DNA of 63,439 nt, filler included, from Reticulomyxa filosa (taxonomy: Eukaryota; Protista; Foraminifera), in assembly GCA_000512085.1 (NCBI GenBank). It is 22 parts of 22 records of this genome, joined end to end, with 100 filler letters (N's around TTAATTAATTAA, not from the genome) between each part and the next. Parts side by side here need not be neighbours in the genome. Positions count along the whole stretch, not along the records: positions 11,990 to 15,071 come from ASPP01023042.1; 21 more parts are not named here. The stretch is one strand, 5' to 3'. Shown here piece by piece: positions 4,010 to 15,171 of the stretch; the stretch's first letter is position 1, and each line of letters opens with the position of its first letter. A program made the position numbers and the translations under genes. The notes below the pieces were generated by a model. It worked only from the letters and a program-made list of their open reading frames with translations, was not told the DNA's origin and did not search any database.

Positions 4010-6186
4010 AATGGCAATGGCAACAAGGTCGACTATGACAATGGCGGAAGAGAGCAGAAGAACGAGGAGAACGTGGATAGTGTAAGAAAGAGAATTGAGA
4101 ACGTTTCGATTGACGACGTGCGAGGAAAAGGAAAAGGAAAAGGAAAAAGAAAGGACATAGGATACGACGAGTTTGAAGAGGTGAATGTATTGCCTAAGTG
4201 GGTCGATAAAGAATTGGAATGGTATCGAATGGAGAGTATCGATACAGAGTATCAGGCTGCGATAATGGCGGAAACAGCAACAACGACAATGACAACGACA
4301 ACGACAACGACAACGACAACATTGACATTGGATCATCGCAAAGGAGTGAAAAGAGAGAAAGACTTGCTTACGCAAAAGTGCAGCTTTGTCGTGGACGAAC
4401 TCATCCGTGGCGAGTTGTACAACGTGCATCGATTCAAGTTGGAAAAGCATCACTTCAAATCGTATAGTTTGTGGCTGCTGAGTGACCCCTTTCCGCAGTT
4501 GCCATGGGAAAACATTTTACGTATTATTGTTCGCAGCTATTTTCACAGCACCTTTCGCTGTCCCATTTGCTTGTCCCAAGACTTTTTCATCCCCTTTATG
4601 ACCCCTTGTGGACACATCTTTTGTGGTAATTGCGTGTTGCATTGTCTGCACGAATACACTGTTTCCTTTTCGCACGTGCACACTCCTGACAAAGAGGCCA
4701 ACGCCGTCGACTTTTGGAAGTACGTTTGCGGCCCTTGTCCTTTGTGTCACACGCAGTTCCACTTCCAACAAGCGAGAATGGTGCTTCTGCACAAAGTGCA
4801 CAAATACAAGTCGGGCGATTTCATCGACTTTGTTTTATTGGAAAGAGAACATGGCACTGAGCATATTCAACCTGCTGGCCTTGTCGATACGCTTTCTGAT
4901 GCGGAAAAAGAACAAGAACACAAAGAGAAGATGACATACGATACAACAAACATAAAACATACAAAAAAGGACAAGAAAACAAACAACAAACACGAACAAG
5001 AAGACATGCACACGACGACGACAACGACGACAACGACAACGACGACAACGACATGTGAGAATGATGAATCGTCGTGGATTTGGAAATTCCGACGATTTGA
5101 TGTGATCGATGTTGAAAAAGAGAGCGCTTTTATACACGACAAATTACTGGAAATTGAACGATATAAGAAATCACTGTCTTCCCATGATTTCTTTGATGTC
5201 CCCTATCTCCTTTCTTTGGCCAATTATTTGGAACAACTCCAAGCTCATATCTTGCAATCTCATAAAGAAGCCCACAAATATGGTATTTTATATATTATAT
5301 GTAATGTATGACAATAATACGTGCATAATATGTATACATATATATATATATAATACCATATTATATACCCACGTGTAAATAATGTCGTTGTAATGACACA
5401 CTGTGCTTTGACATGTGTTTACATGGTATGGCGTTGAAAGATTTGACAGCTCAAGTCAAAATGGACAAAGTGATCGAAAACGAACGGATGGGCAAGAACC
5501 ATCAAATGGAAGAATTGTCGCAGTCGAAATCACGATACAGCTACGTGTATCAATCGATGGAAGGACAGTACATGTTGTTAGATCCTTTGAACTGGCAAAT
5601 GCTACGCTCAGAATATATGTCTTCGTCCCATCAAAAAAATACGATATCCTCCGATTTGCTGGAACAAAGGCTGCCACGCTATTTAAAGCACTGCAAAATA
5701 TTGCAAATTGAAAAGTTTACATTCACTCCACAGCTGAAACAACGATTCAAATGGCTGAGTTCTATTCTGCCTTTCAACGCCGATTTTGGATTGGTGGAAA
5801 TTGATATGACGAATCTTGTTTCCAAACAGGTGTATCAGCAATACCAACACGAAATTGAAAAAAAGGAACGCTTTCGACAACGAATGCAACAAGAGAAAGA
5901 GGCGTATGACAAGTTGCAAAAAGAGCGCCTTGAACGGCAACAACAAGAACAAAAACAAAAGCATGAACAGCAACAGTTGCTATTGCTTCACCAACAGATC
6001 AATGACTTATATGATCAGGGTTCTACTCTCATTGCCGACACTTTTTCTTCGGGCAATGTTTCATCTGATTTGAAGCAAGATCTTCTCTCCGCACAGCCGC
6101 TACTATCTACTACTACTGCCACTTCTACCAAACGCTCATCAGATAAAACTTGGTCAGACTTGCTCAAACAGCCAAAAAAGCATTAA
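4010..6186 (+). CDS. RNF10: RING finger E3 ligase, RNF10/Mag2 family (5'-partial; intron ~5283-5440)
   Basis: C3HC4 RING CPICL...PCGHIFCGNC...CPLC. The C-terminal motifs YVYQSMEGQYMLLDPLNWQMLRSEY and RFKWLSSILP match the RNF10/Mag2 conserved block. A phase-1 intron joins the two ORFs in frame. Confidence 0.8.
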
Positions 6187-7328
6187 AACTTCGGAATCAT
6201 CCATTCACGAGAAACAAAAAAACAATGATGGACAGCAACATCATTCGATTAATCCCAAACAACTCGCTCAATCAAAGACAAACAATGGGAAACAAAATGG
6301 AAATTAATATGGTAGTAACTATTATTGTTTTACTATTATTTTTTATTGGATATCTAATACTAACTTATAACAAAATAATAAGTCTTTGAAAAATACTTTT
6401 AAACAACTAGGAGGAAAATTGTTTTTCGGTTTAATTGTTCGAAATTTATTTCGAGATGCGCCTTTTATCTTGCCTTCAAGGAAAACAGCGCTGATTTTTC
6501 ATTTTTGTTTCTTCAAAGTCATTGATTTCCGTTCAACAGATTCTTCTTGCAAGATTTTTAATTGTCAAATGCTCTTTGAAACCAAAGAATTAGCTAATCC
6601 TGCCAAAGAAATTTTGAAGAATATCTTTAAAGATTTATAATGATTTTCGTTGCAATAAAGTTTAGCGGAAACAGTAAACAAACTTCAAAGAAAGAGTTTT
6701 TAAAAAATTCTGATAAAATATTTTATAGTACAATATATGTTAAATATCTAGGAAAAATTGATAACATTGCTTTCAAATAATCAACAATGCAACTTCGACT
6801 TTACATAATCTCGATTGTAACATATCAATAAAAACTAATTGAAGTATCACAATCTGATATTTCAAAATTAAGGACTCATGAATGTACATGATAAGCATGT
6901 TAACGAACACGATATGGAGTGCCAGAGTCTATCTGATTGCATTTTTGATCGTGCTGCGTCGCCAATAATTTCGTTATTTTCATTGACAATTATCACTTTT
7001 TCTTGATCTGATTTTTGAAATAATCTGCGTAATTTAAGTTTTTTATGTTACCTTTCGAAATTTTTTCATACACTTGAATTATTTTATTTTTTTTAAAAGT
7101 TGGCAGCTACGATTTTCTCGTCTTCTCGAAATTTGCATTTTTTTAAAACATTTTCTAAAAGGTCTTATAAAAAGATATTTCGTTTTTTAAACGATCATTT
7201 AACAAAATAATTTGGTTGCGCCTTGGAACCCAAAACAAAAAGGAGCTTATCCGATAATTCTTTAAACGTTTTTCATCCAAAACATGATATGTTAATTTTA
7301 ACAAACCCAACTAAGGGTTATTTGCACC

Positions 7329-8959
7329 TCAAAAACTAATTTTAAGACACAGAACCAACATTACTAACGAAACGAGACCAGTAGACATCATAGTAGCTGA
7401 GCTTGCTTCTGTTGCTGCTGTTGTGGTTGTGGTTGTGGTTGTGGTTGTGGTTGTTTGCTTTTTATGATAACACTTTTCACTCGCGGAACAATAATTGTCA
7501 GTGCCTATATTGTTAATATTTTTTGTGCACATTAAAAACAAGTAATTACGTAATTTTTTTTATAAACATACCGCAAAAACTCGAGTTGTAGCATTTAAAG
7601 TACGTGCAATTCCAGCACACCACCGCGTCGGTCTCGTCGATATAAGACCAAGTGACATTACCGAGGGCCTTGATTGATTTTGCATTTTTCTTATCCTCCC
7701 AAACGGTGCAATGTTGTAAGTTCAACTACAAAAAAGTAAGATTTCACAAAACAAAAAAAAATGGGGCATTACATTGCATACAAATTTTTTTTGCAACTCA
7801 CTGAAAAGTTTTTATCCACGATATTGTCAACGGTAACCGTCGCAAACGGAAATATGTCAGTATACATTTGTTGATAATCGATCGTTTGGTCCACCTTCAA
7901 AAGAGTGACATTACTTGAATAGTCTGTCAGAGGACTGGAACATCGTTGTGTTGTACTGTCTGATACACAGCTGAGTTTCTATCCAAACAAGTTACATATC
8001 ATCACTCACACTTGCAATTGCAGTCATCAAACATCGTACATAACAACACAGGCTTACACGAAAAAGCCTAATGAACTTAACAGCAGTGTAAACAGGGTAT
8101 CCCGTGCTGACACCAAGACGCCGGCAGCCGTTGTCTGCTACTTGGATGGTGAGTTGATTAGTACAGCTGTTGTCGGAATAAGTTGTTGTCACGTAGCCAT
8201 CCCCAGTGCAATTTGTTCTGTTCAAAGTTGTACATAAAACAAATAATTAATTAGTCACTTGTTTTGAAAATTAGGCCCCTTCTTGAAGCCTTATTTTAAA
8301 ACAAAACAAAAAAAAATGTATTTGTTTTTTTACTTGCTATAAATTGCTGTGCCATTTACTGAATTGCTATAAACACACACATCTTGTGAAATTAATGTGA
8401 TGGCTAAGGGGTCCGAACCACTCGCCCATCCATTACAAGAAACCAAATATTGAGCCATTTCAATGTAGTTCGTGGTGCCATCGCAAACTGCATAGCCCCC
8501 CATTCCGGGCGTATTTTTTATTGTAAACGACTTGCTTGTGGCAGTTCCACTGCATTTATTCGTCGTAACGGGACTGTCACAAGCGCTAGCCGCATAGCTC
8601 TAATTCAAAATAAAATAAAAAAATGGGTCGGAAGAGGGAGGCCAGAAGAACGAAAAAATTTTAATGTATACGTTCTTTCAAACTTACGTGTCGAGTTATT
8701 GTGTTGTTCGAGCAAGTGAATATCGCATAACCACAGCCATCTGCTGCCCCAACTGGAACACAGGTGTCCAAGGGATATGGGACTAATGCGTTATTACCAA
8801 GGGCGGTATAGTTCCCAATGAAGTATTTGCTTCCAGCGGAAGCAAGAGTCTTTCATTGTTGTTTATTTTTAAGAAAAATTCATGCCATGAAAGTCCTTTT
8901 GCTAGATAAGACTAATGAAAACCTACCGTAGTCAAAGCTAAGCCGAGAAGAGAAATCAT
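7329..8959 (-). CDS. Multi-exon Cys-rich secreted, probably GPI-anchored surface protein
   Basis: Starts MISLLGLALTT|TLASAGSKYF (signal peptide split by an intron). Cys/Thr/Asn-rich exons include YPLDTCVPVG and TTTYSDNSCT. It ends in a poly-Thr stalk, ASSA and a hydrophobic tail LVSLVMLVLCLKISF-stop. Confidence 0.7.
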
Positions 8960-11870: not shown

Positions 11871-12661
11871 ACGAAACTCATACCTTTTTNNNNNNNNNNN
11901 NNNNNNNNNNNNNNNNNNNNNNNNNNNNNNNNNTTAATTAATTAANNNNNNNNNNNNNNNNNNNNNNNNNNNNNNNNNNNNNNNNNNNNATAACTAATTA
12001 TTTTACAATTATTTTATCATAATTTTACTTTGGAACTGTCAGTGTTGTTGATTTCTTGTACTGTACATTTAATAATTATCAATTAACTGTTCAAAATACT
12101 TCGACTGAACTTATGCAATACCATACTAAAGAATTGTTACTGTCAATGAAAATTGTGTTAGTGGTCACTTATCAATTGATGCAGTGTATCAATGTAACAA
12201 AGTAAAAATTGATACAAAAAAAACTAAAATCAAACAAAGGCAAAACTAAAAAGAGAACTTTTAACATAATCACTTCAATGGGTGGCATTTTAGGCATGCA
12301 GTTTTTTTTCCAACTTTAGCACGCATTCCAAACACAATCAAGTTTCATTTACACTGTTGAAAAAAAGAAAAAAATAACGATGTTCCAATTTATTTGTTTG
12401 TAGCAGTTCTATGGACGTGAATCAAAAAAATCTTCGATTATCATCAATATCCAAGACTTTAGAAATGATACAACATATTTTTCATTTGAATGTGACATAA
12501 ACAAATCTTCATTGTAATTGCAAAACATTAGCAGGTGAGCATATAATGTAATGTTCAAACTGAAGAACGAATGATATTTTTCATTCAATTTTTTGGCTAG
12601 TATCTAGGAGTGGAAGTGGCTCTGCACGGGGAGAACGAAGTCTAGATTCACTTCCCATGAA

Positions 12662-13876
12662 ATGGCAATGAGGTCAGTTGTTTATATTTTTTTGCTTTTC
12701 TTCTGGGACATTTCTCATTGCACCTCCATTTGCAATCCGGCAAGAGGAGCATTGAAGATAAGCGGTGGGTTGTCGTTATTGACGAACGGAAGAGAAAGCG
12801 AAGAGGGCACAAGTTATATTGAGTGTGTATCTTGGATAGACGGCATCGCTTCAGTGAAATATGAGTATCAGCCGAAACATGGAGTGCCAAACAAAGTAAA
12901 ATTATTTCCATGCATTTCTACAATATGGAATTCTAGTTTTGTGAGAAAACAAGTGTGCAAAGAGTAAAACGACGACAAAACAAAAGAATGATTTGATTTG
13001 AATGCAACCAATAGAAAATGAACATGCAAATGAAAGTTCCAGTCTGCAATTACCATTTGACATATGGAATAACCGCAACGGACATGTGTTTAGCAATTGG
13101 AAAATAGTGCATAGCAATGAAAGTGAAGATGACAATTACAGAGTGGGATATCGACTACTGTTGAATGACAGGCCAAAGACCAATGCAAATGAGTCAGAAG
13201 ATATGGAGATAATGATATGGTTGATCTATCAAAACGAATACCCAAATGAATGGGGAACCGAAATAAAGAGGGGTATTGAATTGTGTGGGTATTGTTGGAA
13301 TTTGTATGTGAGCGATGATCACAACGAAACAAAGCCAAATGAATGGACATTTCAAAGTTGCACGAATTACACAAGGTCTGTGAATGACTTTGATATCAAT
13401 GTGTTTTTGCAGTGGTTGTATACGTTTACGGATCGCTCGTCGTATATCTCAATCCCTCGGTACTTGATCGCAATTCAATTCGGACAAGAGATAGCAGAAG
13501 GGAAGGGAATGTTCCGAATCACTTCTTTTGACGTTGTGGTTTACACGGAAGTGTCTGGGAACACGACATCACTTCCGTCATCCACTCGGGTTACACCTTC
13601 TGCTGGACAAAAGGGACAAATATCTTTTAGTTAATTTGGTTGTACGTCATACAAGCAATTGCAATTTTTGCTCTACAACACGTATATCTTGAATGTGACG
13701 ATATAGTGTTGATTTGCTTGGGATAGGTATAGCGACAGTCGGTGTCATTGTGGTAGTTCTTTTGACTATTGTTTGTGTTATCGCTATCTACTTGCGCTAT
13801 AGAATTGGTCAGATGATGAAGAACGCAACACCCGTTGAAAGTACTGTGTTGTCAAAAAGTGACAATGTAAATACAG
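12662..13876 (+). CDS. Signal peptide, GH12-like (jelly-roll glycoside hydrolase) ectodomain, S/T linker and TM helix
   Basis: Hydrophobic N-terminus. GH12-like motifs KVKLFP, EIMIWL (Glu 13206) and YLIAIQFGQE (Glu 13488). Predicted introns 12936-13014 and 13630-13726. TM segment IATVGVIVVVLLTIVCVIAIYL is followed by RYR. Confidence 0.75.
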
Positions 13877-13964
13877 GTTGTGAATGTATCTGATTGTCTG
13901 TCCCCAACAAGCAACGAACAAATAGACAAATAAAACAAAATAATTTGTGAATTGACTCTGACAG

Positions 13965-15048
13965 AGAGATATGTTAGTTTTGCTCTTCAGCTGTTCAATC
14001 AGGTATGAGTTTGTTCAATTGGAGAGGTTACAACAACATGTATTCAAAAAAAAAATAATTGATAATAATTTAAAAAAAAAAAATAACAATAATAAATAGT
14101 TCAATCGTGATAATGAAGAAAATAGCCTTTTTAGTTAAGAAAATATATGTCTGCGTATTAAACAGACACTAAGAGCACAAATAGAAACACAAACCCAAAA
14201 CATACAAACTTGATGATGCAACAGCAATAACCGCGTGGTTGGAACCAGCAGCAAAACAGTTGCAAAAGGAAAACGACTTGAATGACAATGAGAGAGACAT
14301 AATTGAAGGAATTTTTTTAGTAATTCTCAAGTACGAAAATCTACGCAGCGAGGTACAAACAAATCCAGCGACAATAAAGACGCCTAATTTTTGTCGTCGA
14401 GTCACGGAAACGAAACAAAGTGCGCACATTACAAAAGTAGGGGAAGTGATCACACCATCGAATTCTCTGGGCCGCACCTTGCAGCAAAATCTTGGCTCGG
14501 AATTGGACAATGAAAAATATTGCTCTGACAGCGAGATCGTTCTCTCCAAAAAAAGGGAGCAGCACTATTACATCGGTTATTATATCTATAACATGAAACA
14601 TACAATGACACACACAATATTAAAATAATGTTGACTTGCGTTATATAATAGTTGTCTCATTCCTTAGACATGCCAAACAACTTGGACATTGCATTGCTGT
14701 CGACGAATCCAATTGTGAATTACGGCGAAAATGACTTGGACGGGGCGGCAAAGGAGGAAACATTGTTGAATAAGATATTAAACAAAGCGGACAAGCAGAT
14801 ACATGTGTTTTGCAGTGTGTTGACCAAAAACTCGCTATTGCATTGTCTTCGCAATGCGCAAATTGTACACATCAGTGGCCACGGAGTCGCAAATAACGAG
14901 TTGTACGTCGAAGACGGGTTCGGAGGTGTCACGGTTATTTCTGGGGATGACATTCAGAGTGCATTGGCGCAAGGTCCAAAGGTTGTCAAATTGGTGTTTT
15001 TGTCATTGTGTTACTCGGGTCGATTATCCAAGGCTTTGATCAATGCAG
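13965..15048 (+). CDS. Cytoplasmic region with CHAT (caspase HetF-associated) protease domain, 3'-partial; probably the same gene as the GH12-TM
   Basis: LDIALLSTNP, AQIVHISGHG (His 14880), LYVEDGFG and VKLVFLSLCYSG (Cys 15009). Exons 13965-14002, 14185-14575 and 14668-15048 join in frame through GT-AG introns. Confidence 0.8.
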
Positions 15049-15171
15049 GTACACACACACACACACACACANNNNNNNNNNNNNNNNNNNNNNNNNNNNN
15101 NNNNNNNNNNNNNNNTTAATTAATTAANNNNNNNNNNNNNNNNNNNNNNNNNNNNNNNNNNNNNNNNNNNN

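Follow-up and report, generated by a model that had tools for sequence, protein, structure and literature searches.

Does the freshwater foraminiferan Reticulomyxa filosa carry a gene that joins a glycoside hydrolase outside the cell to a caspase-like protease inside it, or do two separate genes lie close together on one small contig? The question is raised by contig ASPP01023042.1 of assembly GCA_000512085.1, the whole 3,082 bp of which lie within the 63,439-nt stretch of joined genome parts that we analysed (the window; positions below are window coordinates unless another locus is named, and equal the contig coordinate plus 11989). A first-pass annotation of this DNA had drawn one spliced gene on the plus strand, from 12662 to 15048, for a signal peptide, a GH12 ectodomain, a transmembrane (TM) helix and a cytoplasmic CHAT protease; the public annotation places two plus-strand genes on the contig. 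We favour, at about an even chance, two neighbouring genes on the same strand as in the public annotation, with a TM exon added to the first of them, a glucanase. We do so because the relatives and paralogs of the CHAT part have no GH12 or TM part, because a stop codon five codons past the donor of exon 3 is followed by AATAAA, because ATG-started first exons offer the CHAT part other beginnings, and because GC content is low at 14015-14164.

Each coordinate given for the proposed chain of six exons agrees with the sequence, including the quoted peptides, the TGA at 13891-13893, the His at 14880 and the Cys at 15009. All five proposed introns are of the GT-AG type and keep the frame, with lengths of 79, 97, 88, 182 and 92 nt; the mean intron in the R. 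filosa annotation is 87 nt (Table 1, PMC13746701). Their GC content (0.24-0.35) lies below that of the exons (0.37-0.45), and from ATG 12662 to 15048 the exon phases fit together with no stop codon. Searches with this chain took the exons one at a time.

A glucanase with a predicted membrane anchor

Exon 1 (12662-12935, + strand) provides the start codon, an N-terminus that by eye resembles a signal peptide (a short basic segment, then hydrophobic residues and a small polar stretch) and, outside the Pfam GH12 match, the divergent first part of the ectodomain. The identical exon is found in P0001, the 297-aa 'endo-1,4-beta-D-glucanase [Reticulomyxa filosa]' encoded by public gene A (12662-13634, + strand), and intron 1 (12936-13014, + strand; 79 nt, GTTTTG...ATAG) is also part of that model. 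Exon 2 (13015-13629, + strand) carries the GH12 catalytic core with several N-x-S/T sequons, followed by a Ser/Thr-rich stalk. It matches Pfam Glyco_hydro_12 (PF01670) at 42.6 bits (cut-off 27; E 9.5e-11) over profile positions 83-204 of 207, the C-terminal 60%; positions 1-82 are unmatched, the N-terminal half being too divergent. With this match above cut-off and both catalytic Glu residues present, the GH12 call of the first-pass annotation holds.

The solved structure closest to exon 2 is the Bacillus licheniformis GH12 xyloglucanase XG12 (PDB 2jem/2jen; E 1.5e-6). The Glu in the exon 2 motif E-I-M-I-W-L aligns where these deposits have Q or A, a position that we take to be the engineered GH12 nucleophile, and the Glu in F-G-Q-E aligns opposite their F-G-T-E. 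Judged from this alignment, both catalytic Glu of GH12 are kept, so the domain looks more like an enzyme than a pure sensor and need not have the role of glycan sensor proposed for it earlier. The R. filosa protein thus shares with XG12 the above-cut-off Pfam match and the motifs around the two catalytic Glu (E-I-M-I-W-L and F-G-x-E), and differs in its divergent N-terminal half, its Ser/Thr stalk and its C-terminal TM anchor. Characterised GH12 enzymes are mostly soluble and secreted. A protein search with exon 2 returned only P0001, identical to the query, and a single-sequence AlphaFold2 (AF2) model of P0001 reached a predicted local distance difference test score (pLDDT) of 32.

Public gene A, which spans 973 nt for an 894-nt coding sequence and includes intron 1, passes the donor of intron 2, ends at TAA 13632-13634 and is without a membrane anchor. 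Intron 2 (13630-13726, + strand; 97 nt, GTTAAT...ATAG) is not in the public model, and its donor type, GTTAA-, is verified by homology in paralogs. Its removal opens the frame of exon 3 (13727-13893, + strand), which encodes a TM helix, R-Y-R and a short cytoplasmic tail, and which ends either at the donor CAG/GTTGTG (13876/13877; the slash in a motif marks the splice junction) or at TGA 13891-13893. The most hydrophobic 19-residue Kyte-Doolittle window of this exon scores 3.12 and is followed by R-Y-R; a window that hydrophobic appeared, in any of six frames, in only three of 500 (0.6%) first-order Markov simulations of the contig piece. The helix, moreover, stands directly behind the Ser/Thr-rich stalk. 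The TM exon looks real and the public glucanase model truncated, and adding the exon looks like a sound correction; here the first-pass annotation, with its TM helix and its extension of the glucanase, does better than the public one.

Unit 1 (12662-13893, three exons) would accordingly comprise, as a type I membrane protein, a signal peptide, the GH12 domain, the Ser/Thr-rich stalk, the TM helix and a short cytoplasmic tail. R. filosa is phagotrophic, and we infer that unit 1 may be an active endo-beta-1,4-glucanase/xyloglucanase, facing either the outside of the cell or the lumen of its food vacuoles, that would digest the beta-1,4-glucan of algal or plant prey walls. If the gene is separate, it gives a corrected model of a rhizarian glucanase, membrane-anchored instead of secreted.

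An incomplete CHAT domain and its NTPase-bearing relatives

Exon 6 (14668-15048, + strand) encodes the N-terminal two thirds of a CHAT/caspase-like domain, which is cut by the contig end. It matches Pfam CHAT (PF12770) at 27.7 bits (cut-off 24; E 2.3e-6) over profile positions 101-201 of 289, an incomplete domain. His 71 (14880) and Cys 114 (15009) occupy invariant columns in an alignment with nine relatives, and an AF2 model of the exon built from the 10-row alignment has a pLDDT of 80.4. The top Foldseek matches of this model in the PDB are the SAVED-CHAT protein 8tl0 (E 8.6e-6) and then the large subunits of caspase-2, -7 and -3. The Pfam match, the invariant His-Cys dyad and the fold together bear out the earlier assignment to the CHAT/caspase clan. 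The protein 8tl0, which belongs to type III CRISPR and CBASS-type (cyclic-oligonucleotide-based anti-phage signalling system) defence, is structurally the closest to the exon 6 model (template-modelling score 0.68 by query), but identity is 26%, and 8tl0 is bacterial and has a cyclic oligonucleotide sensor domain, of which there is none here. The open frame of exons 5 and 6 extends over about 257 codons. That these exons are open and the dyad is kept at only about 40% identity to the paralogs suggests purifying selection and expression from some start.

Searched exhaustively with HMMER against 1.84 billion representatives, exon 6 had 45 matches. Besides P0002, the product of the public gene that covers this exon, the nearest are the R. 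filosa paralogs RFI_33557/RFI_40350 (the latter P0047), RFI_21070 (P0004) and RFI_10942, a short radiolarian fragment from Astrolonche serrata (P0010) and metagenomic proteins of 725-1,092 aa (the metagenomic relatives include P0005-P0009). Over the CHAT core, identity to exon 6 is 35-38% for eight relatives and 26-32% for two more distant ones; they share with it the motifs H-I-S-G-H-G and C-Y-S, and exon 6 begins at the equal position of the fold. The relatives consist of a soluble N-terminal region (ARM-like or other), a low-complexity linker, CHAT, a Cys/His-rich stretch and a P-loop nucleoside triphosphatase (NTPase) that matches AAA_16, nSTAND1 or NACHT-like profiles. The copy studied here differs in having no N-terminal exons on the contig, and its C-terminal part lies off the contig.

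More distant relatives of exon 6 have the layout ARM-UBA-SAM-CHAT-NACHT/NB-ARC(-TPR), and by analogy this layout suggests that the family works like cytosolic sensor-proteases. Proteins like the nucleotide-binding, leucine-rich-repeat (NLR) proteins, of the class of signal transduction ATPases with numerous domains (STAND), carry CHAT effectors in fungi and bacteria, and some of them control gasdermins (reviewed in PMC12881547); in contrast to these, no NTPase, repeat sensor or gasdermin partner is visible on the 3-kb contig. Unit 2 (14185 to the contig end) would be the 5' part of a gene of the CHAT-protease family, the remainder of which lies off the contig, and to judge from its relatives the product would be a cytosolic, NTPase-controlled NLR-like protein with the caspase-like domain as its effector. 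If separate, the gene is a further member of a little-studied CHAT-NTPase family in foraminifera and radiolaria.

Two side observations concern this family. Between CHAT and the P-loop NTPase, P0005-P0009, P0047 and P0048 have a conserved Cys/His-rich stretch (C-C-C-x-H-x-G-H ... C-x-C ... C-C) with no Pfam match, which may be an undescribed zinc-binding module of the protist CHAT-NTPase family. The metagenome scaffold that carries P0007 also contains split genes for adaptor-complex subunits (L005:3547-5212), so the source of P0007 is a eukaryote with introns, sampled from the environment, and not a bacterium.

Two neighbouring genes or one fusion

The chief alternative is a single fused gene, which we rate as a real but minority possibility. 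It would encode a signal peptide, the GH12 ectodomain, the TM helix, a cytoplasmic linker of about 190 residues (tail, micro-exon and exon 5), CHAT and probably an NTPase off the contig. The corresponding protein is one that we entertain only tentatively: a eukaryotic protein that crosses the membrane once, with a GH12 domain competent for catalysis on the outside and, on the inside, a CHAT protease after which a STAND NTPase may follow. Such a gene would have arisen when a 5'-truncated CHAT-NTPase copy was captured by the glucanase gene upstream.

The frame does run on through five GT-AG introns, and this part of the first-pass claim of one spliced GH12-TM-CHAT gene stands. The conclusion of a single gene is another matter, because chance supplies so many routes that in-frame joinability carries no weight for a fusion: between the TM exon and exon 5 there are 111 stop-free in-frame routes through one internal exon, and several direct routes, such as that from donor AAT/GTAAAT at 13867 to the acceptor at 14184 (a 318-nt intron). 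The claim also finds no support among relatives or paralogs. A GH12 match is present in none of the 45 CHAT relatives, and none has a segment as hydrophobic as exon 3 ahead of CHAT. At three paralogous R. filosa loci that we compared (L002, ASPP01050566.1; L003, ASPP01018417.1; and L004), only exon 6 has a match; exons 1-5 have no counterpart, and no GH12 or TM exon lies upstream of CHAT at any of the three. The GH12-TM-CHAT architecture, which the first-pass annotation had suggested looking for, is absent from every one of these relatives and loci. There is no record of a longer protein that includes exon 6, the CHAT relatives are cytosolic, and a GH12 domain that keeps its catalytic residues need not be a sensor.

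Features of the DNA between the two units also favour two genes. Five codons beyond the exon 3 donor the frame ends at TGA 13893, and AATAAA follows at 13929-13934, 36 nt further on, within what would be intron 3 of a fused gene (13877-13964, + strand; 88 nt, GT-AG) or, in the two-gene reading, 3' untranslated region. The hypothetical micro-exon (13965-14002, + strand; 38 nt, 12 codons and a split codon, donor CAG/GTATGA) is just one of the 111 routes, lies in a frame that is open only across 13934-14005 and has no significant similarity to relatives. Its GTATGA donor and its want of an in-frame ATG are as first described, but the argument built on them, that the CHAT part is therefore not a separate gene, fails: six ATG-started first exons reach the acceptor at 14184, and those beginning at ATG 13971 (a 42-nt exon) and ATG 14113 can each start an exon that splices into it. 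The interval 14003-14184 (+ strand; 182 nt, GC 0.24, poly-A runs), hypothetical intron 4 or an intergenic spacer, houses the first exon and intron of P0002. Within it, at 14015-14164, is the lowest GC of the piece (0.21), resembling the 5' flank. Two candidate likenesses in this region were dropped. The likeness of the micro-exon or the start of exon 5 to the family motif A-L-x-L-A-I-W was seen by eye and is supported by no test, and the DNA similarity between intron 4 and the homologous intron of the paralogs consists only of low-complexity poly-A/(AAT)n, on both strands.

Several points nevertheless weigh against two separate genes and in favour of a fusion. The frame of exon 5 (14185-14575, + strand; 130 codons, part of P0002) opens right at its acceptor, where the stop TAG 14182-14184 is the acceptor itself, and contains no ATG, so unit 2 requires an exon upstream. 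TGA 13893 and ATG 14113 are only 219 bp apart. The public solution, gene B (14113-14993, + strand; ETO10870.1, which is P0002, 'hypothetical protein RFI_26508, partial', 246 aa), consists of a 21-nt exon from ATG 14113, a 51-nt intron (14134-14184), exon 5, intron 5 (14576-14667, + strand; 92 nt, GTTATT...TTAG) and most of exon 6. Its seven-codon first exon is unsupported; the donor of its first intron, TTA/GTTAAG, is of a type that homology-verified paralog introns show to be normal for R. filosa. The N-terminal exons of the family are missing as well: in tblastn the N-terminal regions of P0006, P0007, P0008, P0047 and P0048 match L002 and L003 and not this contig, and a word-based search with the P0047 N-terminus gave no match, so the copy has acquired some new 5' end. 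Exon 5 is presumably a linker ahead of the CHAT core; Pfam, BLASTP against the paralog N-termini, tblastn, a hidden Markov model of the family N-terminus, hhalign and the ESM Atlas yielded no relative of it. Being apparently under selection, exons 5 and 6 must be expressed from somewhere.

The splice sites and the state of the annotation point the same way. Introns of L002 verified by homology measure 80 nt (GTATGG), 200 nt (GTTAAG; GC 0.17, poly-A and (AAT)n) and 85 nt (CAG/GTTTGC). Both donors that a fusion needs here, CAG/GTTGTG and CAG/GTATGA, show CAG/GT like a verified donor of the paralogs, and L003 has the identical acceptor, AAATAG; since the verified introns are alike, these sites and an AT-rich intron 4 of 182 nt are normal for R. 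filosa. The public models, for their part, misplace or truncate the start of two paralogs and divide one into four. At L003:3916-8385, four consecutive models (4017-4568, 4661-5461, 5601-6724 and 7636-8385) all match the single paralog P0047, and this similarity makes it almost certain that the annotation has cut a single CHAT-NTPase gene into pieces. At L002:1665-2935 the public model of P0047 is N-terminally truncated and lacks at least four upstream exons (about 1665-1823, 2206-2316, 2484-2544 and 2625-2706), which match the N-termini of P0007 and P0048. In a family so over-split, a division between GH12 and CHAT on this contig would be no surprise. Should the two genes be separate all the same, the locus adds a documented example of the severe fragmentation of the CHAT-NTPase family in the R. 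filosa annotation.

If the gene is fused, engagement of beta-glucan by the ectodomain, or clustering on a particle, would control the cytoplasmic caspase-like protease, which the ectodomain would hold or regulate at the membrane. An NLR-like module for cell death or signalling would then have been re-wired to a surface glycan-binding enzyme in a foraminiferan, linking recognition of prey or pathogen walls to proteolytic signalling in a protist. It would be, to our knowledge, the first surface receptor to connect a caspase-like protease inside the cell with a glycoside hydrolase domain. The fused model would share with the Myxococcus xanthus protein DdvA, a membrane-spanning anti-sigma factor that has TPR-CHAT and for which autoproteolytic signalling has been proposed (PMC11506125), the combination of a single-pass membrane protein and a CHAT domain. 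DdvA differs in being bacterial, with a periplasmic CHAT and a cytoplasmic part that binds the sigma factor, whereas the fused protein would be eukaryotic, of opposite topology and with a glycoside hydrolase outside.

A third explanation, that a duplicated CHAT-NTPase gene has left the CHAT part as a remnant, 5'-truncated and either non-functional or expressed by read-through only, or that the contig misassembles two unrelated loci, would fit the absence of the family's N-terminal exons, an assembly that is highly fragmented (N50 3.6 kb, 30% repeats) and a contig that terminates in a microsatellite, but we consider it improbable because about 257 open codons, an unvarying His-Cys dyad and a confidently predicted fold, all at only about 40% identity to the paralogs, argue for purifying selection, and no junction artefact is seen in the sequence.

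Contig ends and probable errors in the paralog models

The CHAT part is unfinished at the contig end, where a possible donor, GCAG/GTAC at 15049, is followed by (AC)10 up to 15071. The paralogs continue without an intron (D-A-G-V-P-H) at the point where the contig stops at (AC)10. The assembly probably broke at a microsatellite within an intron that is specific to this CHAT copy. An Rfam search of the contig piece gave no matches.

Two further irregularities were seen in the public models of the paralogs. In one of the L003 models, a 21-nt 'intron' does no more than bypass an in-frame stop. At L002:4290-4420, P0047 departs from P0003, its mate in a cluster at 90% identity, after N-L-L-G-Q-K-K (W-F-W-K-H... 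versus M-V-L-E-A-F-K-N-A...), so the P0047 model may contain a frameshift or a wrongly placed intron.

At the other end of the gene pair, the 5' flank of the glucanase (12532-12600) contains a canonical donor, CAG/GTGAGC, and a T-rich stretch ending in TAG about 65 nt downstream, immediately ahead of the region of the start codon. This segment may be an intron in the 5' untranslated region of the glucanase gene.

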